64,000 bases of DNA from IMG/VR virus record IMGVR_UViG_3300042308_001511, positions 186,001 through 250,000 of that record. One strand, written 5' to 3'. Below, piece by piece: positions 21,591 to 55,495 of this stretch (position 1 is the stretch's first letter; each line of letters begins with the position of its first letter). The translations under genes and the position numbers were made by a program. The notes below the pieces were generated by a model. That model did not search any database. It worked only from the letters and a program-made list of their open reading frames with translations, and was not told the DNA's origin.

Positions 21591-23045
21591 TTACGTTTGT
21601 TTGAGTTTACTTAACTCATCTTCAATCATATCACCGATAGTTTTGACATCATCTTTTCCACCATTCTTCAGAAAGTCTGCATAAGACGCAACCTTCTTCA
21701 TCTTCTCTGGATCATCCTTTATCTCTGCTAGATTGTTTTTCGCTTCTTCTGCTTCCTCTGCAACGTTTGGAAATCCTACTATCCTATTGTAACCAGCTTT
21801 GAACTCCTTGCCGTCGTGTTCGAAAGTAATACTCTCGTCGTTATTTTTGTCGTCAATTAATTTCATCTTACCTACTCCAACAACATCCTTCTGTTCTTCG
21901 GGCTTCTTCTTGGCATCGTATGCGGTTGCATCAACACCTGGTAGTAAAAATATTACTTCTTGTCCATTATCGAAGATAGGTTTGAGTTTTTCATAACTCA
22001 ATGCTGGCTCTTCTTTGCCTGTATTTCCCTCACCGAATTTGTGACTTTCTACTTCTTTACCATCGACCTTAATCTGGTCTAATACACCTGTTTCGTATTC
22101 TGACTTACCGTCAATCTCAAATACTTGACCATCTGCTGTTCCTGATGTAAGTCCTGTGAGTTTTATTGTTGCACCTTTTTTAGCTTCGCCTGAAATATCT
22201 GCGAATATTTTTTTACCTTCTGCAACTACTAACTTTTGACTACTTGATCTGGTTACTTCGTATTTAGTGGTACCCTCTACTGGTGCTTTAAGTTCAATCT
22301 CTACGTTTTTCCATTTAAGTACTATCGTACCTTTTCCTTCACCCTCACCGGAGAACTTGTCGACCTCTTGTTCGTTCAATGCGTCTGAGAACTTGTACAT
22401 CTGTGGTAGAACCGTGGTTTCTATCCACTTAATTACTTCACCCTTCTTTTTGTCGTCAGTCAGTGGTGCTATGAGTTTTTTAAGAAGTGGAAGGTGATCC
22501 GTTGTGTCGATGAAGTTCTTTCCGTCTTGTGTCCTCTCTATTGCTTCACCTGATTTAGCATCGAGTTTTATTGCTGGTTTAGGTAGTGGTTGTCCTATTT
22601 TGAAATTTTTGGCAACCTGACCACCGTAGTTTAGGAACACCATCATATTGTTCCTCATCTTCTCGAGCATGTATGACCACATCTTTTTTTCACCCTCAGT
22701 CTTCCTCTCTGCAACGAATCCCTGTATTGCAGTCTGTGAGAGTACTCCGTCGTCCGGATCCACGATTTTACTGATAAGGTCGAAACAATCCTGATCATTG
22801 AACTGTGTCTTAGCTTTATACTCTTTAAATAGTGGTGCGAGTAAGCTGTCTGCACTCGTAGGATTCAGTATGTCGGTCTTGATGAACTTCTTCTGTGCCA
22901 CAAAGTCTTCACCGAGTTTGTCTATTTTGGCACTAAGTCTTTTGTATATACCCTTGAACAGGTTTGCCAATGCTTTGAAGATGAATTCTTCTTTTACTGG
23001 TTCGATACCTCTGAACGACTCGTAGTTCTTTACAATTTTACCCAT
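21591..23045 (-). CDS. Hypothetical protein with CTS-like N-terminus (probable head-internal)
   Basis: MGKIVKNYESF...; TATATA box upstream. Confidence 0.8.
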   Translation of the reverse strand: MGKIVKNYESFRGIEPVKEEFIFKALANLFKGIYKRLSAKIDKLGEDFVAQKKFIKTDILNPTSADSLLAPLFKEYKAKTQFNDQDCFDLISKIVDPDDGVLSQTAIQGFVAERKTEGEKKMWSYMLEKMRNNMMVFLNYGGQVAKNFKIGQPLPKPAIKLDAKSGEAIERTQDGKNFIDTTDHLPLLKKLIAPLTDDKKKGEVIKWIETTVLPQMYKFSDALNEQEVDKFSGEGEGKGTIVLKWKNVEIELKAPVEGTTKYEVTRSSSQKLVVAEGKKIFADISGEAKKGATIKLTGLTSGTADGQVFEIDGKSEYETGVLDQIKVDGKEVESHKFGEGNTGKEEPALSYEKLKPIFDNGQEVIFLLPGVDATAYDAKKKPEEQKDVVGVGKMKLIDDKNNDESITFEHDGKEFKAGYNRIVGFPNVAEEAEEAKNNLAEIKDDPEKMKKVASYADFLKNGGKDDVKTIGDMIEDELSKLKQT

Positions 23046-23068
23046 TTTACTTATTTGTTTTATATTCG

Positions 23069-23725
23069 TTATATATTAATCTTCTCGAGCTTGAAAAGAC
23101 CTAACATCGTAGGGCTGTTCTCTGGTAAGTCCAATTCTGTCTTTAACATATCGACCAGTGACCATCTTAGCTCACTGATGTAATATTCGAGGTCACTGTA
23201 CCATATCCCGTCCGGTCCTTTTCCGTAGTCTATGTTGAGACTGATGTGGAAAAGTGGCCTTATGGTTTGTGTATTAAGCAGTTTTTCGTTATGTGTTGAT
23301 GCACGTACGGAATCAACCTTTACCGAATCCACGAGTTCTATCTCGTTTACTAGCTCTTTGGTGAAATCTTTTTCCGCGTCCTCTGACTCATCTACCCGAT
23401 TGATTAAACTGCTATGTGCCTTCTGGATCCATTTGTCGATTGTTTGTATTAATGTTCTTTTGTCGTAGATTACCAAAGTTAGTCTCCTATCAATACGGTA
23501 ATTTGTAAAGACCGACATATTGCAGTCACCAAGCCTCTGTTCTAGTACTCCTATTGCGTCTAGTAGCTCTTGGTCGTTTGTCTCTTCTGGTATTAGTGTC
23601 ATGTAGAATTTGACACCGTCCATCTCAACGTGTTTGTATTCACCTTCCAGGTTCAGTTCCTCGAAGAATGCAGTGGTTATCATATCAGAGTCGTTGAACT
23701 CCTCAAACAGTTTTATCCATTTCAT
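23069..23725 (-). CDS. Hypothetical protein with CTS-like N-terminus
   Basis: MKWIKLFEEF...; AATATATAG immediately upstream. Confidence 0.8.
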   Translation of the reverse strand: MKWIKLFEEFNDSDMITTAFFEELNLEGEYKHVEMDGVKFYMTLIPEETNDQELLDAIGVLEQRLGDCNMSVFTNYRIDRRLTLVIYDKRTLIQTIDKWIQKAHSSLINRVDESEDAEKDFTKELVNEIELVDSVKVDSVRASTHNEKLLNTQTIRPLFHISLNIDYGKGPDGIWYSDLEYYISELRWSLVDMLKTELDLPENSPTMLGLFKLEKINI

Positions 23726-23765
23726 AAACTATATATTAGCTTCTGTTTATAAGAAATAAAAAACT

Positions 23766-24239
23766 ATGTCAGAATATTTAGAAAAAGTCGCCGAGTTTCA
23801 CAAAACATTTGGTGCGCCTATACTCGCTACACCTCAAATACCATCTGAGGAAAGATGTAAATTGAGAGTTAACCTTCTACAGGAAGAGTTGAACGAGTTA
23901 TCCGATGCTATAAAGGCAGGTGATATCGTAGAGATTGCAGATGCACTCGCAGATTTGCAATATGTTCTATCAGGTGCAGTTTTAGAGTTTGGTTTGAAAG
24001 ATAGGTTTGATCCACTTTTCGATGAAGTACAAAGATCAAATATGAGTAAAGCATGTTCTACTCAACAAGAGGCAATAGAGACTCTTTTACACTATAAACA
24101 AAAGGATGGTACGGAAGGAACATATCAACAAATTGGTGATGTTTATGTTGTGAATAGGAACGGAGACAACAAAGTATTAAAGTCTGTGGCCTATTCACCT
24201 GCAAATCTAAAACCAATAATTTATGAAGAGTCCGTATAG
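23766..24239 (+). CDS. MazG-like NTP pyrophosphohydrolase (PRA-PH/DR2231-like)
   Basis: VAEFHKTFG, LLQEELNEL, IADALADLQYV, FDEVQRSNMSK. Confidence 0.88.
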   Translation: MSEYLEKVAEFHKTFGAPILATPQIPSEERCKLRVNLLQEELNELSDAIKAGDIVEIADALADLQYVLSGAVLEFGLKDRFDPLFDEVQRSNMSKACSTQQEAIETLLHYKQKDGTEGTYQQIGDVYVVNRNGDNKVLKSVAYSPANLKPIIYEESV

Positions 24240-24558
24240 TAAAGCCTTACTAGAAAAATTAATGTTGATATACGGTGAAAAAGTAATTAATTTATATACG
24301 GTAAAGATTGATAAAATGGTATCTGAATTAGAGTCGGGATTCGTAGGACCATACATTTATAAAATTGAATGGGGTGGTGGTAAACCTGTTGAAATAAAGC
24401 CTATATTCTGTGACGAATTCATAAAATCCGGTATGGACACTTGGGTCGCACTTAGAGAAGGTAAGTACATATCTTCACATTCTTTTCACCAGTTCATAGA
24501 TTGTAGATCTGAAATACACCGTGAAAGACAACTGAACGAATTACTCGAGAATGAATAA
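24223..24558 (+). CDS. Hypothetical protein with tag variant (RERQLNELLENE)
   Basis: 111-aa ORF overlapping its neighbours. Confidence 0.7.
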   Translation: MKSPYSKALLEKLMLIYGEKVINLYTVKIDKMVSELESGFVGPYIYKIEWGGGKPVEIKPIFCDEFIKSGMDTWVALREGKYISSHSFHQFIDCRSEIHRERQLNELLENE

Positions 24559-24808
24559 GAATTCTTATTACGACATACTGATGACGGAGGTAACGGTTAG
24601 TGTTGCCTACCGTGTATTCGGTCTGGAAAGATTCGATGAAGGACAGAGAGTTTTTCTACATAGTCATCCCAGGATTACAAGATGGTTCTGCTTCGATCGT
24701 GATTATATTTTATACACACCTAGTGAATATGAACGTATGAAATACTTCATTGATGAGACAGAGTGGAGAGATGAAAGAATAGATACAATACTAAAAAAGA
24801 AAGAATGA
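24551..24808 (+). CDS. Hypothetical protein with tag variant (WRDERIDTIL)
   Basis: 85-aa ORF. Confidence 0.7.
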   Translation: MNKNSYYDILMTEVTVSVAYRVFGLERFDEGQRVFLHSHPRITRWFCFDRDYILYTPSEYERMKYFIDETEWRDERIDTILKKKE

Positions 24809-24812
24809 AATT

Positions 24813-25178
24813 ATGATGGTAATGCTTATTGACATCGATGGCACGTGTTGTACGGATATAATGAACGAGGATTCGCACCTATATCCAACTGCGGAAGTTA
24901 TTGATGGCTCACTCGAACAGATAAACAAATGGTATGACGAGGGTCACCATATTACGTTTTTTACAGCGAGAGAAGAGAAAGACCGACAGGTTACAATTGA
25001 TTGGCTTGATAAAAATGGTTTCAAATATCATGGTTTGATAATGGGTAAACCGAGATGTGTGAATCCGGTGGATGAGTATGTTTGGATAGACAACAGAAAG
25101 GTGAGGGGTGTTACCTATGACAATGTTTGGGGTGACTTAAAGACGGTGACTAAGGATATATTAACTTTCGGAGAATGA
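24813..25178 (+). CDS. HAD-family phosphatase
   Basis: IDIDGT (DxDGT), FFTAR, MGKPR and WIDN motifs. Confidence 0.8.
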   Translation: MMVMLIDIDGTCCTDIMNEDSHLYPTAEVIDGSLEQINKWYDEGHHITFFTAREEKDRQVTIDWLDKNGFKYHGLIMGKPRCVNPVDEYVWIDNRKVRGVTYDNVWGDLKTVTKDILTFGE

Positions 25179-26044
25179 AAATATTAGATGGGAAGGCAGT
25201 CTCTGAGAAAATACTCTCTGAGACAAAGGTAAAGATAGACACTATGTGTCATAACAACGCTATTCCGAGACCAAGTCTCGCGATAGTGATAGTTGGTAAC
25301 AATCCAGCATCAGAGACTTATGTTAAAGCTAAGATAAGGGCTTGTGAGAATGCTGGTATATCGTCAAAACTTATAAGATTTGACGAATCTATTGGGAATT
25401 TTGAACTATTCAACGAAGTTTCCAAACTAAACTCTTCGCACTTTGATGGTTTTATAGTACAACTCCCGTTGCCGGAACATATAGATGTAGATGCTATAAT
25501 TGGACACATAGATCCAGATAAAGACGTGGATGGTTTTCACCCTCTAAATTTTGGAAGGATGGCTATAGGTCAACCATCAATGCGACCTGCGACTCCATAT
25601 GGAATACTTAAGTTGATACAGTACTATGACATAGAGACTAAGGGTAAGCATGTAGTTGTAATAGGTAGATCTAACCTCGTAGGTAAACCGATATCTATTA
25701 TGCTTGGTAATGACTTCGGTATTGGTAGATCTACGGTTACTTCGTGTGATATCAACACTCCATATGATCTTTTAGTATCTCAGACTAAGATGGCAGACAT
25801 TGTGATAGTTGCTGTTGGCAAACCAGGTCTTCTTACTTCAGATATGATAAGACCGGGTGCTGTTGTTATAGACGTCGGTATAAACAGGAACGAAGAAGGT
25901 AAGTTGGTTGGTGACGTAGATTTTGATACGGTTTCTGATATTGCTGGTTGGATAACTCCGGTGCCTGGTGGAGTGGGTCCTATGACTGTGGCTGGTTTGA
26001 TGCTCAACACATTTGAATCTTGGCGAAGTAGGTGTTTCGATTAG
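25175..26044 (+). CDS. folD: Methylenetetrahydrofolate dehydrogenase/cyclohydrolase
   Basis: ASETYVKAK, VQLPLP, KDVDGFHP, PATPYG, GRSNLVGKP, TPVPGGVGPMT. Confidence 0.95.
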   Translation: MKILDGKAVSEKILSETKVKIDTMCHNNAIPRPSLAIVIVGNNPASETYVKAKIRACENAGISSKLIRFDESIGNFELFNEVSKLNSSHFDGFIVQLPLPEHIDVDAIIGHIDPDKDVDGFHPLNFGRMAIGQPSMRPATPYGILKLIQYYDIETKGKHVVVIGRSNLVGKPISIMLGNDFGIGRSTVTSCDINTPYDLLVSQTKMADIVIVAVGKPGLLTSDMIRPGAVVIDVGINRNEEGKLVGDVDFDTVSDIAGWITPVPGGVGPMTVAGLMLNTFESWRSRCFD

Positions 26045-26105
26045 ATTTTTGTAAATATACATCTATTTGATAAAGAACAATTTATAAAAAAATATTATAA
26101 TATTT

Positions 26106-26732
26106 ATGAAGTTATATACTACATTTACACCATCACATCGTCAAATGTATGACGAATATTTCTTACCTACGTTAAATGGATCTGATAACTTTGAATTGGT
26201 ATCTGTTGAGATACCTCAGGAGTGTGCAACTGGTAAGTTCTATGAAGAGGGTTGGTCTCTGACCTGTTTCAGAAAGGTGGAACTTTTCGTTGATGCGTGT
26301 CGTCAGAATATGGGTGACATTTTCGTTTACTCTGATGTTGATATACAATTTTTCGGACCAATTAAGGATGTTTTGATTGAAGAACTTGGTGAATATGATA
26401 TGGCAGTACAAAATGATACTGCACATTACTATTGTTCAGGATTCTTCATTTGTCGTGCAAATGAAAGAACTTTGGCTATGTTTGAGGCTATGAGAGATAA
26501 CTACCAGAGTGAGGATCAAACTACATTAAACAGGCATATACACCTATGTCGTTCTAAATTCCTTTCTAAACGTTTTTTCACTATTGCACATCTTACGGGG
26601 ACGGTATGGGACGGAAGTGAACTTCCTATACCATCTGATATACTTATGCATCATGCAAATTGGACTTCTGGGGTTGATAATAAAATAAAGATGATGGAGA
26701 TGGTTAAGAAAAAAATTAATTCATATGGATAG
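26106..26732 (+). CDS. Nucleotide-diphospho-sugar transferase (GT77-like)
   Basis: YSDVDIQFF DxD motif, CSGFF, DQ, HANW...K. Confidence 0.7.
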   Translation: MKLYTTFTPSHRQMYDEYFLPTLNGSDNFELVSVEIPQECATGKFYEEGWSLTCFRKVELFVDACRQNMGDIFVYSDVDIQFFGPIKDVLIEELGEYDMAVQNDTAHYYCSGFFICRANERTLAMFEAMRDNYQSEDQTTLNRHIHLCRSKFLSKRFFTIAHLTGTVWDGSELPIPSDILMHHANWTSGVDNKIKMMEMVKKKINSYG

Positions 26733-27576
26733 TTATCAGAAAAATCTTTACGAAAAGTTTGAAAGATTCAGACCTAGTCCATCGTACCCTACGTATCCAC
26801 CTTATCATAAAGGTCTGTATCTCGAGGATTACTTTATAGAACGTTATTCTTCTGAAGATTTAGATGTTTCTAGGTATCTAATACCGGTATCTTGGACTAC
26901 TTGTTATGTTGAGAACAAAATAAATGGATTACAACAATTGATTGATTCACTCGATCGAACTAAAAAATACTTTACAGTTGCACAACATGATGATGCAATA
27001 CGTGAGATTTTACCTCCGGATACCTTATGTTTCAATGCTGGTGGTAATGGTGGTGGTGTACCTATTCCACTTATATGTTCGCCTATCTCTACAGAAGAAA
27101 TAGAAGATGTTGATAGGGACATATTCTGTTCTTTTGTTGGATCGATAACACATCCAATACGTTCGTATCTTTTACAATCACTTGGTAACAAAGAAGGATA
27201 TTATTTCTCTGCTAGGAATTGGACATCATCGGTTTCTGATGGTGAATTACAGAATTTTATCTCAATTACTAAGAGGAGTATATTTGCATTAGTTCCTAGA
27301 GGATATGGTAGAAGTTCTTTCAGACTTTATGAGGTTATGCAGCTGGATGCTATACCAGTTTTTGTTTATGATGAGCCGTGGTTTCCTTTTGAGGGTGATT
27401 TAGATTGGGACAGCTTCAGTGTTAGAGTACACGTTTCACAAATTGAAAAAATTGATCAGATATTAAAATCTATTGACGTTGATACTATCAATTCTATGAG
27501 ACGAAGTCTTAGTTCGGTTTGGTCTGAAAATTTTAATATGAATTCTGTTTATAAAATTATTTTAAGTAAGATATGA
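26725..27576 (+). CDS. Exostosin-like glycosyltransferase (GT47)
   Basis: FALVPRGYGRSSFRLYEVMQLDAIPV...PF motif. Confidence 0.8.
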   Translation: MDSYQKNLYEKFERFRPSPSYPTYPPYHKGLYLEDYFIERYSSEDLDVSRYLIPVSWTTCYVENKINGLQQLIDSLDRTKKYFTVAQHDDAIREILPPDTLCFNAGGNGGGVPIPLICSPISTEEIEDVDRDIFCSFVGSITHPIRSYLLQSLGNKEGYYFSARNWTSSVSDGELQNFISITKRSIFALVPRGYGRSSFRLYEVMQLDAIPVFVYDEPWFPFEGDLDWDSFSVRVHVSQIEKIDQILKSIDVDTINSMRRSLSSVWSENFNMNSVYKIILSKI

Positions 27577-28313: not shown

Positions 28314-28325
28314 AAAATATGTAAA

Positions 28326-29009: not shown

Positions 29010-29025
29010 AAATAAAAAATAGAAT

Positions 29026-29697: not shown

Positions 29698-29698
29698 T

Positions 29699-31170: not shown

Positions 31171-31227
31171 ACAAAACATTCTTTATTTATAGAACGAATA
31201 CTAATTTCTAAAAAAATAAAAAAAAAT

Positions 31228-33008: not shown

Positions 33009-33015
33009 AATAGAA

Positions 33016-33969: not shown

Positions 33970-33971
33970 GA

Positions 33972-34469: not shown

Positions 34470-34490
34470 AAAAAAATAAAAATAAATAAA

Positions 34491-38352: not shown

Positions 38353-38353
38353 T

Positions 38354-38830
38354 ATGATTACGGTTATAGCGGCAATGTCTAAAAATGGTGTCATTGGTAA
38401 AGAAAACAAACTTATATGGAATCTACCTAGTGATATGGTTTATTTTAAAGAGACTACTACGGGTGGAACTGTGGTGATGGGTCGTAAGACCTTTGAATCT
38501 ATAGGTAGGCCTTTACCTAACCGTAGAAATATAGTTGTTTCCCGTACAGGTTTTACACATAATGGTGTTGAGGTAGTAAGTTCTATCGAGAATGCTTTAG
38601 AGATATGTGACAAAGTATGTTTCGTTATTGGTGGTGGTGAATTATATAGACAGACTTTACCAATTGCGGACAAACTATTGTTGACTGTTGTTGATTGTGA
38701 AGTTGATGGTGATACGTATTTTCCTGATGTGTCAGAAGGTTGGATTAAGATTTCTGATAAGAAGGTTGATGCTGATTTGAAAAATGAATATTCACATACG
38801 TTTATTGAATATGAAAAATGTCGTTTTTAG
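38354..38830 (+). CDS. folA: Dihydrofolate reductase
   Basis: IAAMSKNGVIG, WNLPSDM, VMGRKTFESIGRPLPNRRNIV, IGGGELY, GDTYFP. Confidence 0.95.
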   Translation: MITVIAAMSKNGVIGKENKLIWNLPSDMVYFKETTTGGTVVMGRKTFESIGRPLPNRRNIVVSRTGFTHNGVEVVSSIENALEICDKVCFVIGGGELYRQTLPIADKLLLTVVDCEVDGDTYFPDVSEGWIKISDKKVDADLKNEYSHTFIEYEKCRF

Positions 38831-39221: not shown

Positions 39222-40907
39222 ATGAAGAGAAAGATTAAATCTGCACTTATTTCAGTTTGGGATAAAGAGGGTCTTGATACGGTTGTGAGCAAATTGAATG
39301 AATTGGGAATTCAGATAATATCAACTGGAGGTACATACGAATACATAAAAAATCTGGACATACCAGTTTTATCGGTGGAAGAATTAACAGGTCAACCTGA
39401 AATTATGGGTGGTAGAGTTAAGACTTTACATCCTAAGATATTTGGTGGTATACTATATCAGAGGTCTTCTAAATCTGATAAAAAGGATCTTTCTACTAAC
39501 AATATGAAAGGTATAGACCTAGTTATTGTTGATTTATATCCTTTTGAACAAACAATCGCCAATATGGAGAATGAGGGATTGACTGATGATGATGCTATTG
39601 AGAAGATAGATATCGGTGGTGTTTCGCTTATAAGGGCAGCTGCAAAAAACCATAAAGATGTTTTGGTTATTGGTCATAAAGATCAATATAGCCTACTTAT
39701 GCAGGTTCTTGATAATGGTGGAAGTACTGAGTTTGAAGAGAGAAGAGAGTTTGCAATTGATGCATTCAACATAACTTCAAATTACGATGCTGATGTATTT
39801 AAATATCTTTTGGGTGATTCTGCGGAAGACCTTTCTGGCCTCACTGGTTACTTACCGACACAAGAAGATGGTCTTAGATTTTCGTCAGATGATAATAATC
39901 TAAATGACTTCCTTATTTGTTGGAAAAGGTTTGGATCTAGGCCTAACAGGATATTGATTGAGAATGCATATTCTTCAAAACTTGTTGGTGATGCAATTTC
40001 TGACATAATAAAGGAGAAGAATGTTTTCACTGAGGTTATACCTGATGGTGAAAGTCTGATAATAAATGATAGAGTTTTTGTTAGACTTGAGGATGAACTT
40101 TATTTATCTTATGTTGTAATTGATAGAAATAGTGAGAGTTCTTTCATAGATTCTATGCTCTTTTTGTACAAAGAAGGTTTTGATGGAGTACAAGACTACG
40201 TTGATTTGTTGAACGAGTGTCTTATAGACTTTCAAGAAGACACTGGTAATAAAATAAACGCGATGGTTTTGTCACCTTCTGGTCTTGAGATTGAGACTGT
40301 TGGAATAACTGATTATGATTCTGAGAATATAGAGACATACTATTCTGGTAAAACATTCAAAGCTATGGAAAAGGCAGTGAAGCGTATAAAAGGTTCGAAA
40401 AGAGGAATGACAATTCTTTATGGGCCTAGAGGTACTGGAAAAACAACCTCTATAAATTACATAGCAGATGGTCTTGATCGTATTGTCATATTCATTCCAA
40501 ACAATATGATAGAACATACTATAAATAATCCTGATTTTAGGAAATTTCTAAAGAGATTTGATCAACCTATAATAGTAATAGATGATTGTGAGTTGGCATT
40601 GAACGAGATATACAACAAATCTAACGTTACAACGACCAATCTTGTTCAGATGGTTGATGGTTTCTTGGCAGGTACTACTGATGTTAGTATTGTTGCGATA
40701 TTCAATACTGATAGTGAGGATGATATAGATCACAACCTTTTAGATTGTAATAGTTTGTTGGATGTTGTTGAGTTTACAGAACTTTCGACGGCTGAGTGTA
40801 ATGACCTTTCTAAAATTGTAGATGGTCGAAAGTATAAATCCTCTGCAAAAATGATTGACGTAGTTAAGAAAAGAAAGGGTGAGCAAAAAGAGAAAGTGGG
40901 GTTTTAA
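39222..40907 (+). CDS. PurH IMP-cyclohydrolase (MGS-like) domain fused to an AAA ATPase
   Basis: ALISVWDK, ISTGGT, GRVKTLHP, DLYPFE, IDIGGVSLIRAAAKN over ~195 aa; later GPRGTGKT and IIVIDDCE. No AICAR transformylase domain. Confidence 0.85.
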   Translation: MKRKIKSALISVWDKEGLDTVVSKLNELGIQIISTGGTYEYIKNLDIPVLSVEELTGQPEIMGGRVKTLHPKIFGGILYQRSSKSDKKDLSTNNMKGIDLVIVDLYPFEQTIANMENEGLTDDDAIEKIDIGGVSLIRAAAKNHKDVLVIGHKDQYSLLMQVLDNGGSTEFEERREFAIDAFNITSNYDADVFKYLLGDSAEDLSGLTGYLPTQEDGLRFSSDDNNLNDFLICWKRFGSRPNRILIENAYSSKLVGDAISDIIKEKNVFTEVIPDGESLIINDRVFVRLEDELYLSYVVIDRNSESSFIDSMLFLYKEGFDGVQDYVDLLNECLIDFQEDTGNKINAMVLSPSGLEIETVGITDYDSENIETYYSGKTFKAMEKAVKRIKGSKRGMTILYGPRGTGKTTSINYIADGLDRIVIFIPNNMIEHTINNPDFRKFLKRFDQPIIVIDDCELALNEIYNKSNVTTTNLVQMVDGFLAGTTDVSIVAIFNTDSEDDIDHNLLDCNSLLDVVEFTELSTAECNDLSKIVDGRKYKSSAKMIDVVKKRKGEQKEKVGF

Positions 40908-42372: not shown

Positions 42373-42374
42373 GT

Positions 42375-42650
42375 ATGAAACCGGATATTGGATCCGTTTA
42401 TGTGTGTGTTAATAGTGACACAAATGGGCGATTAGGTCCAAAGGGTCTTAAAGTTGGTGAATTATTTTTAATAAATCGTGTCATTGAGATGTACGATGTA
42501 GATAATTACGATGATGGATATAGATATGCTATCTTTATAAATAATATAGATTCTAAATCTGAATCTATATTCTACATAAAAGATTTTTTAAGGTGTTTCG
42601 TATCTATAGAGGATTGGAGAGAATCTCGATTAAAAGGATTAGAATTGTAG
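42375..42650 (+). CDS. Small hypothetical protein with tag variant (WRESRLKGLEL)
   Basis: 91-aa ORF; isolated copy of the tag. Confidence 0.7.
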   Translation: MKPDIGSVYVCVNSDTNGRLGPKGLKVGELFLINRVIEMYDVDNYDDGYRYAIFINNIDSKSESIFYIKDFLRCFVSIEDWRESRLKGLEL

Positions 42651-47807: not shown

Positions 47808-47857
47808 ACCTTAATAACTTTCCCTTATATATAAAGGTAGTTCTTTACCCTCGATGT

Positions 47858-49231
47858 TTATTGTTCTGACCTTTTGGATACAATCTGGTTAAAGTTGTCT
47901 GCTAGATTGAATTTATATTTCGCACCTAATTTGCCGGACATTTCACCACCTGTAAACTTTATGGATACTAGAAGATCCATCAATTTTTCCTCTTCGATTT
48001 CTATTACTATCTTCATCGGAAAATCATTCATATCCTCATCCTCACTGACTTCAAATTTTACGTGGTAGTCAAATTTTAGTTCCATATCATCGTAGTTATT
48101 TCTGAAGAATGACCTAGCAGGAACCAAACTTAGTATACTTCCGTTATTATTGAGATACCAAACAGATCTTTCGGTACAACCGAGTTTCTCTACTGCCGCT
48201 TTGAAGAGTTTCATCTTTACAGTTCCTCCTGCAATTTTTAGGTTGTTGTCTTCTGTCAATTGTATATCTTCTGGGAACTCAGTCTTTATAGATGATGTGA
48301 ATATATTCTCGAGTATTTTACTATTGAGTAGAACTATTTTTGTCTCTGTCCATTCTTTTTTTACCCTTTCAGGATCCATAAAACACTCATCAATATTTTT
48401 CCATATCTCACTCATAAGGTCTGATAGCTTCAATATATTTTTGTCGAATTGTGGTATTAGTTCACCTAAATGTTTAAAATTTGGATCACCGTGTTTCACA
48501 TCAAAATACTCGAAATAGCCAATTGTTTCTATCCTTTCAGGTTGTATAAACTTCTCGATATGTCTTTGTATATCTTTGTTGGCATTTTCGTAGATTGTCT
48601 TAACCCATTCCTGTGTTAACTTGTTCCAGTGTTTCATATATGCTTCTGAAAAAAGCTTCTCGGTATTTTCTCCTATTAGCTCGTCAGCGAACGAGTTGAA
48701 ACTAGCACTTTTCTGTGTAGACAAACTTTTATTTAGAACAATAGACATTTGTCTATCATCATTCAACTCTATAACTAAGTCTTCGCTGTGTTCTTTGTCT
48801 TTGTTAGGACCGAGCCAATATACCTTTCTTATTATCTCCGGTGTCATTTTTTCTGTAGGTAATATCTTATCGATTATAGCTCTTGCACATACACGTGCAT
48901 TTGATAATTTGTCCCAGTCTTTTTCGATACTAAAATCAGTATTCTCGAATATACCACTGGTTTTTCCAATTTCGTTATCATCTACACATCTTTCACCTTC
49001 AAACTTCCCCAAACATAATCTATTTTTAGCAATAAGTAGGTTTTTAAGATCCGTTAAGAATATTCCTGAGTCTTCGGAATACCTCGCTTTTAGACCTCGG
49101 TCCAGTATATTATCCAGGAACTCGTTGTTTAGTAATACCATTGCGGTACATATTTCACTTACGAGATTCTTTCCGTTATACTCGTTAGATTTGGATTCTT
49201 TGAATAGTTTGTAGTTTCTTAACCACCTCAT
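47858..49231 (-). CDS. Hypothetical protein with CTS-like N-terminus
   Basis: MRWLRNYKLFKES; divergent from 49278 across a palindrome. Confidence 0.8.
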   Translation of the reverse strand: MRWLRNYKLFKESKSNEYNGKNLVSEICTAMVLLNNEFLDNILDRGLKARYSEDSGIFLTDLKNLLIAKNRLCLGKFEGERCVDDNEIGKTSGIFENTDFSIEKDWDKLSNARVCARAIIDKILPTEKMTPEIIRKVYWLGPNKDKEHSEDLVIELNDDRQMSIVLNKSLSTQKSASFNSFADELIGENTEKLFSEAYMKHWNKLTQEWVKTIYENANKDIQRHIEKFIQPERIETIGYFEYFDVKHGDPNFKHLGELIPQFDKNILKLSDLMSEIWKNIDECFMDPERVKKEWTETKIVLLNSKILENIFTSSIKTEFPEDIQLTEDNNLKIAGGTVKMKLFKAAVEKLGCTERSVWYLNNNGSILSLVPARSFFRNNYDDMELKFDYHVKFEVSEDEDMNDFPMKIVIEIEEEKLMDLLVSIKFTGGEMSGKLGAKYKFNLADNFNQIVSKRSEQ

Positions 49232-49245
49232 ATTAGAGATTACAT

Positions 49246-49263
49246 TTTTAATATATATTAAAA
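49246..49263. promoter_or_regulatory. 18-bp perfect palindrome, probable bidirectional late promoter
   Basis: TTTTAATATATATTAAAA between two divergent genes. Confidence 0.55.
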
Positions 49264-49277
49264 CTCTAAGCCCGTTT

Positions 49278-49928
49278 ATGCGTTACTTGAAAGATTATAA
49301 AGGTTATATGGAATCGTTGGTTATAAACCTTGCGACTGCACTCGATCTGATGGAGTCTCTAAACATATGGCATGATACTTTGTTAGATGCAATTGGGGCA
49401 CAGAAAGTAGATATATTCGACGTTCTGAGTCTTTCGAAAGATGATTACAGAAACGATAAATTGGACCTTGATTACTTATGTGGTGGTGGAGAAAAAGATC
49501 CAGATGAAAGGTTTGTAAACTCTCTTAGTAGTATAAAGATGAAAAAGTCTGAGGTTCAGAACACGGAAGATTATGAAACATTTTTGAACAAACCGTGTAA
49601 ATTTATGTTTATATACGGCGCAGAATCGAACGAGTTAGAGAATCCTATTTACCTAATGTTCCAGGTCTGGAATGAAACGGCGGATGAGTGGTCTCCTGCT
49701 GCTTTATATAAAGTGAATGGTGATGCTAAAAAGTTTTACGATAAACTTTCCTCTAAAACGATAGAGATTATTGATGGTGATGAGAACTATATATACACAA
49801 CATCTAATGGTAATGAATGGACTTTGAAGAATCCGAACAAAGAGAATGACTTTTGGAAAAAGGTTTTACGTAAAGAAGATTTACAGGCAGTTGTAAATGA
49901 TCGAAACGTTAGTATAACTATCATCTAA
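49278..49928 (+). CDS. Hypothetical protein with CTS-like N-terminus
   Basis: MRYLKDYKGYMES. Confidence 0.8.
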   Translation: MRYLKDYKGYMESLVINLATALDLMESLNIWHDTLLDAIGAQKVDIFDVLSLSKDDYRNDKLDLDYLCGGGEKDPDERFVNSLSSIKMKKSEVQNTEDYETFLNKPCKFMFIYGAESNELENPIYLMFQVWNETADEWSPAALYKVNGDAKKFYDKLSSKTIEIIDGDENYIYTTSNGNEWTLKNPNKENDFWKKVLRKEDLQAVVNDRNVSITII

Positions 49929-50527
49929 CTTATTTGTCTAGCAACATATCTGAGTATTATTTCATCCTTTATTCTTTGATCTTCACAATGATACCATACC
50001 CACGTATTTGTAGACTCAAGCATTCCAATTCTGTCTTTTATTTCGGATATTCTGATACGCATCATTTCTATCTCTTTTTCCGCCACATCATATTTTATAC
50101 CTAATTGATCACATATAGAGTATAATTCGATGGCTTCATTTCCATTGTAAGATATACCAGCTCTTACGTAAATATCATTCAATCTTGTATCGGTTGTTTT
50201 GTCTGGGTGTGTTATTTTAACTATTTCTCTGTATATCTTCTTTAGTGCTGGGTTTTCATCAATTGTTTTGGTTTCGTCCTCGATGTTCTCGGTATTCTGA
50301 TCTACATTTTGTTCAGTACTTTGTTGTACAGCCTTTTGTATCCTAGCATCCATAGTTTTATCATATTCCTTCTTTAGTTCGGGTTGTTGTTCTAAAAAAT
50401 CAGAGACTTCACGCATAAACCCACCGTCGGCTTCTTGTACAATCTCTGTTTTATAATCTAGGTCTATACGGAGGTATTCAAGCTCCTTTATTAGTTTTTT
50501 GACCTCCAGTTGTGTCAACTTGCTCAT
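49925..50527 (-). CDS. J-domain (DnaJ-like) co-chaperone
   Basis: LKKIYREIVKITHPDK with the HPD motif, flanked by coiled coils. Confidence 0.8.
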   Translation of the reverse strand: MSKLTQLEVKKLIKELEYLRIDLDYKTEIVQEADGGFMREVSDFLEQQPELKKEYDKTMDARIQKAVQQSTEQNVDQNTENIEDETKTIDENPALKKIYREIVKITHPDKTTDTRLNDIYVRAGISYNGNEAIELYSICDQLGIKYDVAEKEIEMMRIRISEIKDRIGMLESTNTWVWYHCEDQRIKDEIILRYVARQIS

Positions 50528-50575
50528 GTTTAACTTATATTTGTACTTTATATATAAACAAAGGTATTTCTAAAC

Positions 50576-50849
50576 ATGGATGTAGACAGTAAAAATGAGG
50601 ACAAATGTAAGAAAATATTTGAGCATTCTTGTGGTTCAGGGCACCTACAGGAAATGGTTTCTCTCAAAGAAGAGAAGCTTTGAGATACATTTTTACTATA
50701 CTCCTGTAAAAAAGAAGATAATTGACTATAAATCTGAGGGAGTTACATTATATATTTTGGGACTAGGTCAGATAATAGGTGATGATGTTTCTTCTATTCA
50801 GGTTTGGGCAGAGGAGAAAGGATATACAACTTCGCATATACTGAAATAA
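50576..50849 (+). CDS. Hypothetical protein, possibly made through a +1 frameshift at CTT-TGA
   Basis: ATG 50576 is open to CTT TGA (50678-50683); the +1 frame continues EIHFYYTP... to 50849. Alternative simple start at 50595. Confidence 0.55.
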
Positions 50850-50861
50850 ATATATAAGTGT

Positions 50862-51269
50862 ATGGAATATTTACTTGAATTCGGGCAGTTGTTTGAAGAC
50901 TCTGCAACAGGTGGTCCAGCTGGTGCTGTATCTGGTGGTGGTTATGTTAACTCACAACCAGCCTCTTTACCAGGCGTGACTACTAATCCTACCTATACTG
51001 CGACAGGTGGTACGGATGGTGACTACATATCAGTTCCTTATAACGCGGGTGGCAAACTTGCCAAATATGATGTTATGGGAAAAGGGCATGGTGCAATGAC
51101 TGGAAAGAAGTCTCGAACCAAAAGACTCGATATGAAAGCATTGAAAAATATTTTTGCAAAAAGACAGGATTATACTGCTGGTCAGGATGAAGTCAAAAAA
51201 CAAAGAGTTATGGACTTTGATGATTTCCAGAAGGCAGACCTTACACAGGTAAAAAGACAACAACAATAA
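50862..51269 (+). CDS. Hypothetical Gly-rich protein with CTS-like N-terminus
   Basis: MEYLLEFGQLFED followed by a Gly/Ala-rich segment; TATATAAG upstream. Confidence 0.75.
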   Translation: MEYLLEFGQLFEDSATGGPAGAVSGGGYVNSQPASLPGVTTNPTYTATGGTDGDYISVPYNAGGKLAKYDVMGKGHGAMTGKKSRTKRLDMKALKNIFAKRQDYTAGQDEVKKQRVMDFDDFQKADLTQVKRQQQ

Positions 51270-51817
51270 TGAAAAAATTGAAAAGATACGACGAGTTCCT
51301 TATAGAAGAAATTAACATCAAACAGGTATTATTGGGTGGTGCAATCACTGCTGGGTCTTTATTATCGAACCCGTCGTTGTCCTCAGAGCCGGTTAAGAAG
51401 GCACCAACAGATACTACTTATTCAACGGAAAAAAGTGGAGATTTAGAACTATTTGTGGATACATTGGAATCTGAAAACCCAGATATATTCACAAATGATT
51501 CACCAGTAGATGGACAAATGATAGAGTTCGGTCATTTTGAGAGGATAGAATACCTAATAAACAAAAAAGATGAATACGAACAAAGTATCGGTAGGAAAAT
51601 AGACCTAAATCTTCTTTCTGGATCAAATAGTAGAATTCCTTTTACTATAAACTATTTCTTTGTTAGAGGTCTCGATAATATAGATAAAGGTCCATTCCTA
51701 ATACAAATGTTGAGTTTGGATTACAACGCTATGATTAAGATGGGTAGACACGACATTATGTTCAACTTTACACGTGTACAGAATGTGAATACACTTGGTG
51801 TCAAGGTCAACTTCTAA
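51269..51817 (+). CDS. Hypothetical protein with CTS-like N-terminus followed by a hydrophobic segment
   Basis: MKKLKRYDEFLIEE, then VLLGGAITAGSLL. Confidence 0.75.
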   Translation: MKKLKRYDEFLIEEINIKQVLLGGAITAGSLLSNPSLSSEPVKKAPTDTTYSTEKSGDLELFVDTLESENPDIFTNDSPVDGQMIEFGHFERIEYLINKKDEYEQSIGRKIDLNLLSGSNSRIPFTINYFFVRGLDNIDKGPFLIQMLSLDYNAMIKMGRHDIMFNFTRVQNVNTLGVKVNF

Positions 51818-51845
51818 GTAATTTTTTTTATAACTAAAAAGACAA

Positions 51846-52451
51846 ATGATGTCACAATTCGACGAATACAGAACTACTAAAATACCAGTGGTGCCAATTC
51901 ATGATAAAAAAGAAAAACTTATTGTTCTTGGGAAATCTGGATCGGGGAAAGACTTTATGATAAGACAGATGTCTAAAAAGGGTCTACTTGCTGGTATTAA
52001 AACAACCAGTCGCCCACCGAGGAAAGGTGAGGTTCAATGGGAAACATATGAATTCGTTGCGGACTGGACTTTCAAAGAGATGATTGAAAACGATGAGTTT
52101 ATAGTTCGCCAGGATTTCCTTGTGACACCAGTGGATAGAGCACCAGAGACTTGGTATTATGGACTCACAAAGAAAGAGTTTGAAAGAGCCCAGGCATTTA
52201 TAATGACACCCGCAGAATTTCTGATGATTGATCCAGAGACACGTAAAGGTTGTTTTGTAGTTTATTTAGATATTGATCGTAGTGTAAGAGAAGATAGGGT
52301 TCTAAGAAGAAGAGATATGAACGATTCTATAAAACGTAGGATGGATGCCGACGATGAGGACTTCAAAGAATTCAATAAAAGTGGAGACTATGATTTAAGA
52401 GTTACTGATGAGGATTTCAACGCAGACGACGTCTGGGCTCTTATGATTTGA
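51846..52451 (+). CDS. Guanylate kinase-like protein
   Basis: GKSGSGKD P-loop, TTSRPPRKGE, YYG motif. Confidence 0.85.
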   Translation: MMSQFDEYRTTKIPVVPIHDKKEKLIVLGKSGSGKDFMIRQMSKKGLLAGIKTTSRPPRKGEVQWETYEFVADWTFKEMIENDEFIVRQDFLVTPVDRAPETWYYGLTKKEFERAQAFIMTPAEFLMIDPETRKGCFVVYLDIDRSVREDRVLRRRDMNDSIKRRMDADDEDFKEFNKSGDYDLRVTDEDFNADDVWALMI

Positions 52452-52508
52452 GTATAAATCTAATCGGGAGAGGTTATTTTTATATATAATCGAAAAATAA
52501 ACCTTTTC

Positions 52509-52844
52509 ATGAATCTCAAGTCCAACATAAACAAAATACATTCGGACCTTCTGATGTTAGAAGGAATAGGCGAGACGGTAAATATCGAAGAAAAGTCATC
52601 TTTTGAATTTGGTAACTACGTTGAAATATCGGCTATGTACCTTGGATTAACAGCAAAGATAGTTATAGAAAAATCTGAAATAGAGAGTAACCAATTCAGA
52701 TGGAGATATTATTCGAATCCTAAAAATGAATCCATTGGTTTGGTTGAAAGGATTTCTACAATTGAAGGTTTCGTTACGGATGTTATTGACATTTTTGAAA
52801 AAAGAAGGTTCGACTCCGACTACCTGACAGAAATAAAAGATTAA
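52509..52844 (+). CDS. Hypothetical protein
   Basis: 111-aa ORF upstream of the baseplate gene, after TATATAA. Confidence 0.75.
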   Translation: MNLKSNINKIHSDLLMLEGIGETVNIEEKSSFEFGNYVEISAMYLGLTAKIVIEKSEIESNQFRWRYYSNPKNESIGLVERISTIEGFVTDVIDIFEKRRFDSDYLTEIKD

Positions 52845-52848
52845 GGTA

Positions 52849-54540
52849 ATGGATTTTACTAGCTTCAGATTTTCTTACATAAAGGAAGAGATAGAGACTT
52901 TTCTTAAGAAAGAGTACAGTAAAGCGAGTCTGTTGTTCAGCAACGCTTCTCCTTATGGACAAATATTGTCTGTTTTGGAGAATCTACATCAACTTTCGTT
53001 TTTATACCTAAAGAATGCAATAAACTCATTCGATATGAGTTTGCCAAACTCTTTGAATAGACGAACTATAAGGAATGCCGCAATAAATGCGGGTCACATA
53101 CCGAGTAGGTCTATTAGTGCTACAGGTACACTTCAAATTAAGGTGAAACCTGCTGCAGATTTAGAGACAGAGATTAGAGATTCTCGAATTACAATATCAC
53201 CGAGACTTTTGATGCGTAATAAAACTAATGGACTTGTTTATTGTGCAGATATAGGTGCCTTACCTTTAACTTATAAAGTTACTAAGAGTACTTCTTTCTT
53301 TCTTCCGATAGTACAGGGTGAATGGAAATCGAAAAGCTATACTGGTGTGGGTGAACCAATACAGAGTTTTAGTGTTAGTGAAGTAGCCAAAGACATAGAG
53401 AACTTTCATGTTCAAGTTTTGGTAGACTATGAGAGTTGGGAGGTGAAACGTAGTATATATGATATGTACCAAGACGAGAAGGCAGTTGTTGTCAGGACTG
53501 GATATAATAATGGTATAGAGATAATATTCGGTAATGGATCTTTTGGTATGATGCCACCATTAGGATCTAATATAACAGTTAGATATATTTTGACTGATGG
53601 ATCTTTGGGTAATATATTTAGAAGAACTCCAAACGATTGGAGTATAATGGGTGATGTGACTGATGGATCTGGTTTTCCGATATCTTTTGATCGTATATTT
53701 GATGTTTACATCTACAACGATATAAACTTCGGTAGTGAAGGTGAGAGTCCTTCTTTCACACGTTCTCTCTTACCATTTGTAACTAATAATGCTGTTTTGG
53801 CGCTACCACAACACTTCACCTATGAGATAAAGAAATTGGGTATTTTTTCTTATGTTAGTGCTTATGAGAAATCTGGCACAATATACATTACGGTTACACC
53901 AAATGTAAACCTATTTAAAAATAAAAGTCAGAATTACTTTACGGTGGATCTCGGTGCTTTTGTTTTAGATTCGTATGAGAAGAAGAAGATAGACATATAC
54001 CTAAGATCCAATGGTCTTATAATGCTTACTAAAAAGTACATAATATCATCACCATCACTTTCGTTTTATTCGGTAAACATATTCATAATGACTTATTCGG
54101 ATGCCACAGACGATAGTGTTAATTCACAGATAATAAACTCTATATCTGGATACTTCTTCGATTTAACAAGGGTATCTAGGATACCAAAAGCAGATATTGT
54201 AAGATCTCTTTCGTTCATAAGTGATATACATTCAGTTGACATACAATTTGTTTGTAAAAAGAATGAAGATTATCACAAAGATCAAATTATGAAAATGGGT
54301 AAACAAATGAATAGTTTTGGTACTAATCCGAGTGGGCAACCATATGATCCAAATCAGATGGTTGGATTGGACCCAGTACTTGGTGATATACTTTTCGAAG
54401 AAAATGAGATTCCTGTTATGAGAGGAGGTTGGTATGATAGGAATGGTGCATTTTATAGTGATGATATAGAGTCTAACGGACTAAAAGCAGTTAATATCTT
54501 CAAACAGGGTGTTATAGATGCTAAAAAAAGACCTTCATAG
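52849..54540 (+). CDS. Baseplate wedge subunit (T4 gp6-like)
   Basis: N-terminal QILSVL...A..RR.I...A...GHIP.R..SA.G and IIFGNGSFGMMPP.GS.I.V.Y..TDGS.GN patterns typical of gp6-like proteins. Confidence 0.8.
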   Translation: MDFTSFRFSYIKEEIETFLKKEYSKASLLFSNASPYGQILSVLENLHQLSFLYLKNAINSFDMSLPNSLNRRTIRNAAINAGHIPSRSISATGTLQIKVKPAADLETEIRDSRITISPRLLMRNKTNGLVYCADIGALPLTYKVTKSTSFFLPIVQGEWKSKSYTGVGEPIQSFSVSEVAKDIENFHVQVLVDYESWEVKRSIYDMYQDEKAVVVRTGYNNGIEIIFGNGSFGMMPPLGSNITVRYILTDGSLGNIFRRTPNDWSIMGDVTDGSGFPISFDRIFDVYIYNDINFGSEGESPSFTRSLLPFVTNNAVLALPQHFTYEIKKLGIFSYVSAYEKSGTIYITVTPNVNLFKNKSQNYFTVDLGAFVLDSYEKKKIDIYLRSNGLIMLTKKYIISSPSLSFYSVNIFIMTYSDATDDSVNSQIINSISGYFFDLTRVSRIPKADIVRSLSFISDIHSVDIQFVCKKNEDYHKDQIMKMGKQMNSFGTNPSGQPYDPNQMVGLDPVLGDILFEENEIPVMRGGWYDRNGAFYSDDIESNGLKAVNIFKQGVIDAKKRPS

Positions 54541-54542
54541 AT

Positions 54543-54797
54543 ATGCTTTACGAGGAGAAAGATATACCTGAGATTCATTTTATGAAACACAGACACAACA
54601 ACGACAAAGATTTTCTTGATTATGAGAAGAACATACTCAGTAACAAATTATCACCTTATATATACAAAAACGATCTAATGAACTCATTTTTAACAATGTT
54701 ACAACCTTTGGTTGCTAAACTTTTCGATCAGATGAATGTCATTAAGAACTTCCAGAACTATATGGTTGATAAATATTACTACAAACATCCAAAATAA
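54543..54797 (+). CDS. Hypothetical protein (probable baseplate-associated)
   Basis: 84 aa, directly after the gp6-like gene. Confidence 0.7.
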   Translation: MLYEEKDIPEIHFMKHRHNNDKDFLDYEKNILSNKLSPYIYKNDLMNSFLTMLQPLVAKLFDQMNVIKNFQNYMVDKYYYKHPK

Positions 54798-54859
54798 CTA
54801 TAAATTTAAAAACCAAATTAGTAGTTTAATATATAAAAGAACAATAAAAGATAATTAGT

Positions 54860-55495
54860 ATGGCAGACAGAAAGATTACGAGCTTCAAAAGGTTCTCGGA
54901 CATAAAGAATCCAAAGATTGATGAGGTCGAGTTGAACTCGAGACCGGAGACCGATTCGGATCTTCCTGCGAACCCTAACACACCAGAGACTGCCGATACC
55001 AGTAGTATAGAAAAACCTATTTCTAGGAAAGGTGTACAACCATTCGAACAGGATGTAAATTTACCATCTGGTGATGATAATGAGTTTGATGACAAAATCG
55101 AAGATACAAATGAATCGAAAGTTGAGACAATTGGAAAAATTGCAAAGTTTCCTAAGAACGTAAATGCATCGAAAGCATATAACTTCCTTGAGAATGTAAA
55201 GGTCAGCAAGAAATCAATTTGGTACATTATGGTTGAAAAACAAGATAATGAACTACAGATGGTTAAGTACAATTATAAAGAAGGTGTTGATTTGGGTAAG
55301 TTTGTTAACGAATTGAAAACTTATTACATAAAGAAATATTCTAAAGAGTCTAAAGTATGTGAAATGATAGAATCGATATCTGTTGATGGTAATGATAAAT
55401 ATTCGATGATAAAGAATATACCTTTAGTAACTGTTGATGGTAGAAAAATGATTTCTATAATCACTGAAGATTTGATAAGACTTCTTTCTAAATAA
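54860..55495 (+). CDS. Hypothetical protein
   Basis: 211 aa; disordered acidic N-half starting KITSFKRF; TATATAAAA upstream. Confidence 0.75.
   Translation: MADRKITSFKRFSDIKNPKIDEVELNSRPETDSDLPANPNTPETADTSSIEKPISRKGVQPFEQDVNLPSGDDNEFDDKIEDTNESKVETIGKIAKFPKNVNASKAYNFLENVKVSKKSIWYIMVEKQDNELQMVKYNYKEGVDLGKFVNELKTYYIKKYSKESKVCEMIESISVDGNDKYSMIKNIPLVTVDGRKMISIITEDLIRLLSK

Follow-up and report, generated by a model that had tools for sequence, protein, structure and literature searches.

Do the genes of an uncultured huge phage that begin with nearly the same short peptide carry a counterpart of the capsid targeting sequence (CTS), the N-terminal tag with which phage T4 loads proteins into its head? 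The question arose from a 64,000-nucleotide stretch (the window; positions 186,001 to 250,000) of the 344-kb virus record IMGVR_UViG_3300042308_001511. There, a first-pass annotation listed seven open reading frames (ORFs) with T4 CTS-like N-termini on late genes, inferred that their products are head-internal, ejected proteins, and suggested that, together with a C-terminal tag, the genome may use two separate peptide address systems. The observation was confirmed and proved larger than first seen: all seven N-termini are present, an eighth lies in the same window, and 48-71 of about 490 ORFs across the record, or about one gene in eight, begin with M-[KR]-x-[IL]-K-x-[FY]-E-x-F-x-[E]. Its interpretation was partly supported, since the resemblance to the T4 CTS, the T4-related lineage and, by promoter inference, late expression hold, while entry into heads, cleavage and ejection remain inferences.

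The tagged genes of the window were scored with a 10-column core matrix. For the three minus-strand genes among the seven, the originally listed coordinate was the low (3′) end, and the N-termini lie at 23045, 23725 and 49231. The gene missed at first, at 16592-17281 (minus strand; 229 aa), starts with MRKLKVYKVFLEG at 17281 (14.1 bits) and has the promoter-like element [AT]ATATATA at 17315-17322. The gene at 21591-23045 (minus strand; 484 aa) starts with MGKIVKNYESF at 23045 (10.6 bits), with the element at 23070-23077, 24 nt upstream; its orthologue in LR745206 starts MKYVRTFESF (12.2 bits). The gene at 23069-23725 (minus strand; 218 aa) starts with MKWIKLFEEF at 23725 (19.0 bits), and its element, at 23730-23737, is only 4 nt from the ATG. 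Scans of the seven originally listed proteins against Pfam and PHROG found nothing, and neither megablast of 8.5 kb of the window nor tblastn of the 218-aa protein found a match among isolated phages.

The gene at 47858-49231 (minus strand; 457 aa), starting with MRWLRNYKLFKES at 49231 (13.8 bits), is a highly conserved core gene of the clade with more than 1000 homologues at 63-75% identity. In their alignment, M1, W3, Y7, F10 and E12 are invariant and are followed by a linker of variable length. Residues 1-18 are disordered in an AF2 monomer model, although this model was mediocre (pLDDT 62) and gave no PDB fold match at E <= 0.001; ESM Atlas look-ups of the 457-aa and 484-aa proteins returned only unnamed viral clusters or nothing. 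The tag also has a raised helical hydrophobic moment. The 46-bp divergent intergenic region at 49232-49277 contains the palindrome TTTTAATATATATTAAAA, located 20 nt from the ATG of each of the two flanking tagged genes, and is a probable bidirectional late promoter. The second of these genes, at 49278-49928 (plus strand; 216 aa), starts with MRYLKDYKGYMES (12.1 bits), and its LR745206 orthologue (56% identity) starts with MRYIKSYKTFKES (16.0 bits).

Further downstream, the weakly tagged gene at 50862-51269 (plus strand; 135 aa) starts with MEYLLEFGQLFED (8.2 bits) and has the element at 50849-50856, 5 nt from the ATG. The gene at 51269-51817 (plus strand; 182 aa) starts with MKKLKRYDEFLIEE (16.4 bits); its start overlaps the previous stop and it has no promoter element of its own, while its orthologue in locus L020 starts with MRNIKRYNDFLNEE (16.5 bits). 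A baseplate wedge subunit gene at 52849-54540 (plus strand; 563 aa; phrog_219, E = 6.3e-22), in an operon whose start at 52509 is preceded by the element, shows that the 47.8-57 kb block is a late virion module. Another weakly tagged gene, at 54860-55495 (plus strand; 211 aa), starts with MADRKITSFKRFSD, with MADRKITSFKRF scoring 9.8 bits and the element at 54828-54835, 24 nt upstream. Both of the weakest examples are supported by orthologues: MEYLLEF of the 135-aa protein corresponds to MEHLKKFEDYLINED (10.0 bits) in locus L020, and MADRKITSFKRF corresponds to a conserved ...VGFKKFSD, kept after a short insertion in the LR745206 orthologue (66% identity).

To determine whether the motif exceeds chance, N-termini were compared with internal sequence. 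A loose regular expression picked up hydrophobic false positives and was therefore replaced by scoring matrices. Genome-wide, 57 of 495 N-termini score above 10 bits, against 5 of 1838 internal Met-started windows, and an earlier 12-column matrix placed 40 of 41 hits within the first 25 residues. A pattern taken from T4 alone (K-x-[FY]-x-E-F) is about 80-fold enriched at N-termini (7 hits in 4455 positions against 2 in 101551). A set of 66 tagged proteins was curated by eye, so its within-genome statistics are partly circular, whereas the T4-derived pattern, the cross-genome scans and the orthologue test are not. With the first 18 residues removed, 57 of these 66 proteins are singletons by BLASTP, and the bodies belong to different families, including PolyA_pol/CCA-adding (from residue 39), GATase, GNAT, P-loop NTPase, DUF2793 and NFACT-R. 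The tag is kept in 13 of 22 orthologue pairs, against 4 of 153 for untagged genes (OR 54, p = 6.5e-11). Synonymous codons vary freely at the conserved columns (F: TTT 32, TTC 49; K: AAA 19, AAG 23; E: GAA 32, GAG 35), and ten different codons are used at the I/L column, indicating selection at the peptide rather than the nucleotide level.

The resemblance to the T4 CTS is objective. A matrix built only from this genome and run over the N-termini of 267 T4 ORFs ranks gp61.1, ipII, ipIII and ipI first to fourth, with 16.2, 16.2 and 14.9 bits for ipII, ipIII and ipI, which are known CTS proteins of T4; the next annotated gene scores below 9 bits. However, gp61.1 is annotated only as a hypothetical protein, so the motif alone may not be sufficient; it showed no similarity beyond the tag to the 135-aa protein of the window. 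The T4 sequence MKTYQEFIAE aligns column for column with I-K-L-Y-E-E-F-x-x-E; in both cases a tag of about 10 residues lies directly at the initiator Met and is attached to unrelated proteins, and a cleavage-like Glu-small-residue site, as in T4, follows it in part of the tagged proteins here. In contrast to T4, the tag is three residues longer at the N-terminus (M-[KR]-x- before the I/L), occurs on 48-85 genes per genome against 3-4, is carried by mostly acidic bodies that include enzymes, and has a likely cleavage register of F-x-E as often as [LI]-x-E.

The lineage itself is T4-derived. Relatives identified by the 1052-aa protein are huge uncultured phages, PTm1, PAU and Lak, and published work places Lak and PTm1 among T4-derived jumbo phages (PMC7824862). 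Complete relatives carry a gp20 portal, a gp23 capsid protein and a gp21-type protease fused to a scaffold, and 57-85 tagged genes each, against 2-5 in T4 and PTm1. The head module of the clade has Portal_T4 (gp20; 192 bits), Gp23 (93 bits) and a gp21-type protease whose consensus keeps stretches resembling T4 gp21 around its His and Ser, as read by eye; the protease is fused, for example at L081:8001-10139, to a scaffold built of repeats that each carry [IL]-A-E. A Peptidase_S77 match was found in PTm1, LR745206, PAU, Lak-A1 and LR756501, and a gp21-type protease in every complete relative tested, although the S77 score of the clade's protease is below the Pfam cut-off (18.8-24 bits). No portal, protease, capsid or terminase gene was found in the 344-kb record, which lacks the whole head and packaging block, so the protease is known only from relatives; BLASTP, tblastn and phmmer searches with PTm1 and T4 head proteins returned only neck-like and giant-protein homologues. 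This is read as a partial record, not as absence of the head genes from the phage. A ribosomal S21 gene, a marker of a published Bacteroidota huge-phage group, was not found. In the LR745206 and L081 head modules, two tagged genes sit directly after the capsid gene, and orthologues of both recur across the 80 head-module loci (43 and 38 BLASTP hits).

Co-expression with head genes was assessed by promoter inference only. The element [AT]ATATATA lies within 60 nt upstream of 45 of the 66 tagged genes, against 48 of 429 others (OR 17, p = 3e-22), and the same element precedes neck, baseplate and giant structural genes in this record, as well as portal, protease and capsid genes in LR745206. For cleavage-like sites, read from sequence alone, 88 of 151 tagged proteins have [LIVFMY]-x-E within 0-5 residues of the conserved F, against 19% background, and the next residue is S, A or G in 48%, against 14.5%, but in this genome only 33 of the 66 tagged proteins have a clear site. 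Co-folding of the clade's protease-scaffold with a tagged 129-aa protein gave no answer and is not evidence either way. As for the proposed second address system, a C-terminal ...R-x-x-K-L-x-E-L-G-I ending exists on 58 small ORFs and never co-occurs with the N-terminal tag, but nothing here shows that it is an address.

Two other lineages offer partial parallels. In phiKZ-like giant phages such as SPN3US (PMC5694885 and PMC10052503), many proteins (about 50 head proteins in SPN3US) are loaded into the head and a T4-related prohead protease removes propeptides of ejection and inner-body proteins after Glu; however, those propeptides are mostly 80-130 residues long and are not a shared short consensus tag, and that lineage is unrelated (phiKZ-type capsid, own RNA polymerases). 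In Sphingomonas phage PAU, a T4-derived jumbo phage, a variant N-terminus MKTL-x-x-LFES with the same architecture (M-K, hydrophobic, F-E-S) was observed on about 7 ORFs, one of them just upstream of the S77 protease, but the consensus differs, there is no expansion, and these ORFs score below 10 bits on the matrix from this genome.

The explanation favored with moderate confidence is that the motif is a portable N-terminal address peptide of about 10-13 residues, the counterpart in this huge-phage lineage of the T4 CTS, whose existence and removal in T4 are already described, in massively expanded form. In this view, tagged proteins would be made late from the same promoter type as the head genes, the short amphipathic tag would dock them through its hydrophobic face (I/L, F/Y, F) onto the scaffolding core of the assembling prohead, the scaffold-fused gp21-type serine protease would clip the tag after a nearby Glu, and the mature proteins would stay in the head with the DNA or be degraded with the core. 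The analysis itself establishes that the tag exists, is almost confined to N-termini, is selected as a peptide, sits on unrelated bodies, is kept across orthologues, matches the T4 CTS, shares a promoter-like element with head genes and belongs to a T4-type lineage with the protease, whereas docking, cleavage, retention and ejection are inferred. Several features fit this model less well: 48-85 different cargo proteins per genome would be unprecedented, given that T4 has three internal proteins whose N-termini match this tag, plus Alt and other core proteins; the mature parts are acidic (median pI 4.8 against 5.9), whereas the internal proteins of T4 are basic; and several tagged genes, including those in the window, lie in a baseplate or tail block.

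The last point raises the possibility, considered unlikely but the most serious alternative, that the tag addresses something other than the prohead, such as the tail or baseplate, an intracellular phage compartment, a protease that times degradation, or the Hsp70/DnaJ chaperone pair that the phage encodes. An exposed, disordered amphipathic peptide, cytoplasmic-type cargo enzymes (a CCA-adding enzyme, a GATase and a GNAT) and a number of tagged genes far above any known capsid cargo set would be compatible with this scenario. It is disfavored by the specific match to T4's internal proteins, the enriched Glu-Ser/Ala site after the tag, the conservation of tagged genes right after the capsid gene and the promoter shared with head genes; in addition, the motif contains acidic residues, which are disfavored in Hsp70-binding peptides. 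A by-product of translation or mRNA constraints at the 5′ end of late messages appears very unlikely. In 27 of 45 tagged genes, the promoter-like element ends only 4-6 nt before the ATG, suggesting leaderless or near-leaderless mRNAs, and the consensus residues can be encoded by AT-rich codons. However, the freely varying synonymous sites lean towards G/C-ending codons, substitutions are conservative at the protein level (I/L, F/Y, K/R), and the tag occurs equally with 4-6 nt leaders, with 17-33 nt leaders and on operon-internal genes. Moreover, most short-leader genes in LR745206 lack the tag, which is invariant across orthologues at 63% identity while the adjacent linker varies in length. 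Equally improbable is descent from one diverged paralogous family without a signalling role: a few subfamilies do share sequence beyond the tag, for instance four proteins continuing ...D-x-V-M-M-S-I-C-D and related ones at 259-313 kb, but the bodies belong to different Pfam superfamilies that cannot be paralogues, most are singletons without the tag, and the tag is retained independently of body divergence.

A more far-reaching hypothesis, compatible with the evidence but tentative and judged less likely than not, is that huge T4-derived phages (340-735 kb) use an expanded CTS to load 50-85 different proteins into each capsid, including a tRNA CCA-adding enzyme, an acetyltransferase, NTPases and an NFACT-R RNA-binding protein, and inject them with the DNA as a ready-made takeover and counter-defence proteome. 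The tagged repertoire would then scale with capsid size (T4 3-4, PAU about 7, huge phages 57-85).

If the tag works as in T4, sequence alone would give a readable list of the proteins carried inside the heads of huge phages, none of which has been cultured and whose injected proteins are unknown. It would also point to candidate injected counter-defence enzymes and offer a natural tag for loading cargo into large phage capsids. The CTS would be extended from a T-even curiosity on three small proteins to a lineage-wide sorting system covering about a tenth of the proteome, and the finding would suggest why very large capsids may be useful, namely as room for protein cargo.

The window comprises bases 186001-250000 of a single linear IMG/VR virus record of 344,083 bp with a GC content of 0.37. 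In a tblastn search with a conserved 1052-aa protein, the nearest relatives of the record were huge uncultured phages, namely LR745206 (635 kb) and LR756502 (642 kb) at 53% identity and LR756501 (735 kb) at 35% identity, followed by Tenacibaculum phages PTm1 and PTm5, Sphingomonas phage PAU, and the Prevotella Lak phages. Published comparative work places Lak and PTm1 in the jumbo-phage group derived from T4-like ancestors, a group with a gp23-type capsid protein and phage sigma factors (PMC7824862). Among other genes, the phage encodes its own full-length Hsp70 (record 138004-139902, minus strand; 829 bits) and a DnaJ with J, zinc-finger, and C-terminal domains (record 120659-121705, plus strand), as well as a Ro60-like protein (TROVE domain plus Ro60 vWA domain) located next to tagged genes (record 48608-50122, minus strand). 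Two large paralogous homing-endonuclease-like genes (phrog_3339, E about 1e-118) lie close together at record positions 127767-129584 and 132671-134479, both on the minus strand. Folate and purine genes are present at window positions 39222-40907, 25175-26044, and 38354-38830, all on the plus strand: FolD, DHFR, and an odd fusion of the N-terminal part of PurH (MGS plus the start of AICARFT/IMPCHase) to an AAA ATPase, the fusion being conserved in a 537-kb relative.

The first-pass annotation had reported a capsid-targeting-like N-terminal motif on seven genes of the window, and this observation was confirmed: all seven N-termini are present, although for the minus-strand genes the coordinate given was that of the 3′ end. 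An eighth example lies at window positions 16592-17281 on the minus strand, and the pattern extends over the entire record. About 66 ORFs, selected by eye, begin with M-[KR]-x-[IL]-K-x-[FY]-E-x-F-x-[E], while objective matrix thresholds give 48-71. The motif is essentially confined to N-termini, as 57 of 495 N-termini score above 10 bits, compared to 5 of 1838 internal Met-started windows, and a pattern taken from T4 alone is 80-fold enriched at N-termini.

To determine what kind of feature the motif represents, the first 18 residues were removed from the 66 proteins, after which 57 of them had no BLASTP relative among the others. The few bodies with recognizable domains belong to unrelated families, including a CCA-adding tRNA nucleotidyltransferase (domain from residue 39), a class-I glutamine amidotransferase, a GNAT acetyltransferase, a P-loop NTPase, DUF2793, and a DnaJ-type zinc finger. 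Conservation is at the peptide level, since synonymous codons vary freely at the conserved columns and ten codons encode the I/L column. For the 457-aa protein encoded within the window, more than 1000 homologs were found at 63-75% identity; in these, M1, W3, Y7, F10, and E12 are invariant and are followed by a linker of variable length, and in the AF2 model of this protein the first 18 residues are disordered. Between this record and LR745206 (median 47% identity), the tag is kept in 13 of 22 ortholog pairs of tagged genes, compared to 4 of 153 for untagged genes. Thus, the tag is a portable peptide under its own selection.

For comparison with T4, a 10-column matrix built only from the N-termini of this genome was used to scan the N-termini of all 267 T4 ORFs. 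Ranks 1-4 were occupied by gp61.1, ipII, ipIII, and ipI (16.7, 16.2, 16.2, and 14.9 bits, respectively), whereas rank 5 was a spurious ORF over tRNA genes and the next real gene scored below 9 bits; the calculated chance that all three internal proteins fall in the top four is about 1e-6. The T4 sequence MKTYQEFIAE aligns column for column with I-K-L-Y-E-E-F-x-x-E, such that the tag described here is the T4 core with three extra residues in front. In T4, the capsid targeting sequence (CTS) loads the internal proteins into the scaffolding core and is then cut off by the gp21 protease. The best CTS-like N-terminus in T4 (MKTFKEFIKED) belongs to gp61.1, a 54-aa protein encoded next to the primase gene (NC_000866, 18966-19130) and annotated only as hypothetical, showing that the motif can occur on a protein with no more specific annotation.

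The T4-type head machinery was not found in this record: searches by Pfam, BLAST, and phmmer revealed no portal, prohead protease, major capsid, large terminase, or sheath homolog. Relatives keep these genes in one block; in LR745206, they lie together at 168-202 kb, a stretch that has almost no homologs in this record, although 175 ORFs of this record match elsewhere in that genome. It was concluded that the record is a partial genome and that its 91% completeness estimate is misleading; relatives have contigs of 537-735 kb. In contrast, every complete relative tested has a Peptidase_S77 match (PTm1, PAU, Lak-A1, LR745206, and LR756501). Eighty IMG/VR head-module loci (L079-L158) were recovered. 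In LR745206 and in one of these loci, L081, the gene order is portal, protease-scaffold, capsid, a tagged NFACT-R protein (129 aa), a 451-aa protein, and a tagged acidic 164-aa protein, and orthologs of the two tagged genes recur across the 80 loci. The tagged NFACT-R protein (L081:12033-12419), which carries an NFACT-R RNA-binding domain (PF05670, 59 bits), sits directly after the capsid gene in both. Pfam scores for L081 are 192 bits for Portal_T4, 93 bits for Gp23, and 18.8 bits for S77. The protease consensus keeps stretches that, read by eye, resemble T4 gp21 around its His and Ser. In L081 (8001-10139) and 42 further distinct orthologs among these loci, the prohead protease is fused to a long scaffold made of tandem repeats of about 14 residues (...S-E-Y-[IL]-A-E-N-L-D-K-N-I...), each carrying [IL]-A-E, the T4-type cleavage signature, followed by a poly-Glu/Asp stretch and a conserved C-terminal domain.

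The sequences following the tag were examined for cleavage-like sites. Of 151 tagged proteins from this record and LR745206, 88 have [LIVFMY]-x-E starting 0-5 residues from the conserved F, compared to a background of 19%, and the next residue is S, A, or G in 48%, compared to 14.5%; in this record alone, however, the fraction is only 33 of 66.

With respect to timing, a promoter-like element, [AT]ATATATA, lies within 60 nt upstream of 45 of 66 tagged genes, compared to 48 of 429 others (OR 17, p = 3e-22). The same element precedes the baseplate operon, the neck-protein homologs, and the giant structural-type genes in this record, as well as the portal, protease-scaffold, and capsid genes in LR745206, and it resembles the T4 late promoter TATAAATA. 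The assignment of these genes as late in the first-pass annotation is therefore a reasonable inference, resting on promoter-like sequence alone. The distance of the element to the ATG is bimodal, at 4-6 nt or 17-25 nt, both genome-wide (including the elements at window positions 23730-23737 and 50849-50856) and in LR745206, and the short class implies leaderless or near-leaderless late mRNAs. A 46-bp divergent intergenic region at window positions 49232-49277 holds the perfect palindrome TTTTAATATATATTAAAA, located 20 nt from both ATGs, and looks like a bidirectional promoter.

The distribution of the tag was assessed at a matrix threshold of 10 bits with strict starts. Tagged ORFs accounted for 48 of 479 in this record, 83 of 911 in LR745206, and 57 of 778 in the 580 kb of LR756501 that were scanned, compared to 5 of 253 in T4, 2 of 300 in PTm1, and 0 of 281 in PAU. 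The PAU genome (JQ362498) has its own recurrent N-terminus, MKTL-x-x-LFES, on about seven ORFs (e.g., 100248-101029, 110913-111383, and 159561-159938), one of which lies immediately upstream of its S77 protease. The expansion is therefore a trait of the huge-genome clade. No paper mentioning these N-termini was found in the literature searched.

The first-pass annotation had also suggested that a C-terminal tag might constitute a second peptide address system. The ending ...R-x-x-K-L-x-E-L-G-I occurs on 58 small ORFs (median 100 aa), which are concentrated at 280-340 kb of the record but also include examples within the window (ORF ends at 10715, 11471, 12517, 16108, 16595, 19217, 24558, and 42650). 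Only 2 of the 58 have the late element and none carries the N-terminal tag, such that this ending marks a separate gene class that is probably not late, and nothing in the present data shows that it is an address.

The proposal that the N-terminally tagged proteins are head-internal and ejected was only partly supported. One copy of each of the 66 proteins totals 15,849 residues, or about 1.7 MDa by calculation, which is small beside the roughly 1000 internal-protein molecules of T4 or the more than 40 MDa of ejection proteins in SPN3US. However, the mature parts are acidic (median pI 4.8 compared to 5.9, p = 3e-10), unlike the basic internal proteins of T4, and some may be core components that are degraded rather than ejected; moreover, the examples within the window sit in a baseplate block. 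On balance, the reading of the motif as a prohead address tag is moderately favored, while a different destination or recognition partner remains a possible but less likely alternative, and both an mRNA-level artifact and a paralog remnant are considered very unlikely. The analysis itself establishes the presence of the tag, its N-terminal position, its portability, its conservation as a peptide, and its match to the internal proteins of T4, whereas late expression and any function in loading proteins into heads, including removal of the tag there, are inferred from sequence and by analogy with T4. These results describe what would be a form of the already known T4 capsid targeting sequence that differs from it in being lengthened by three residues and expanded to about a tenth of the proteome in uncultured huge phages.
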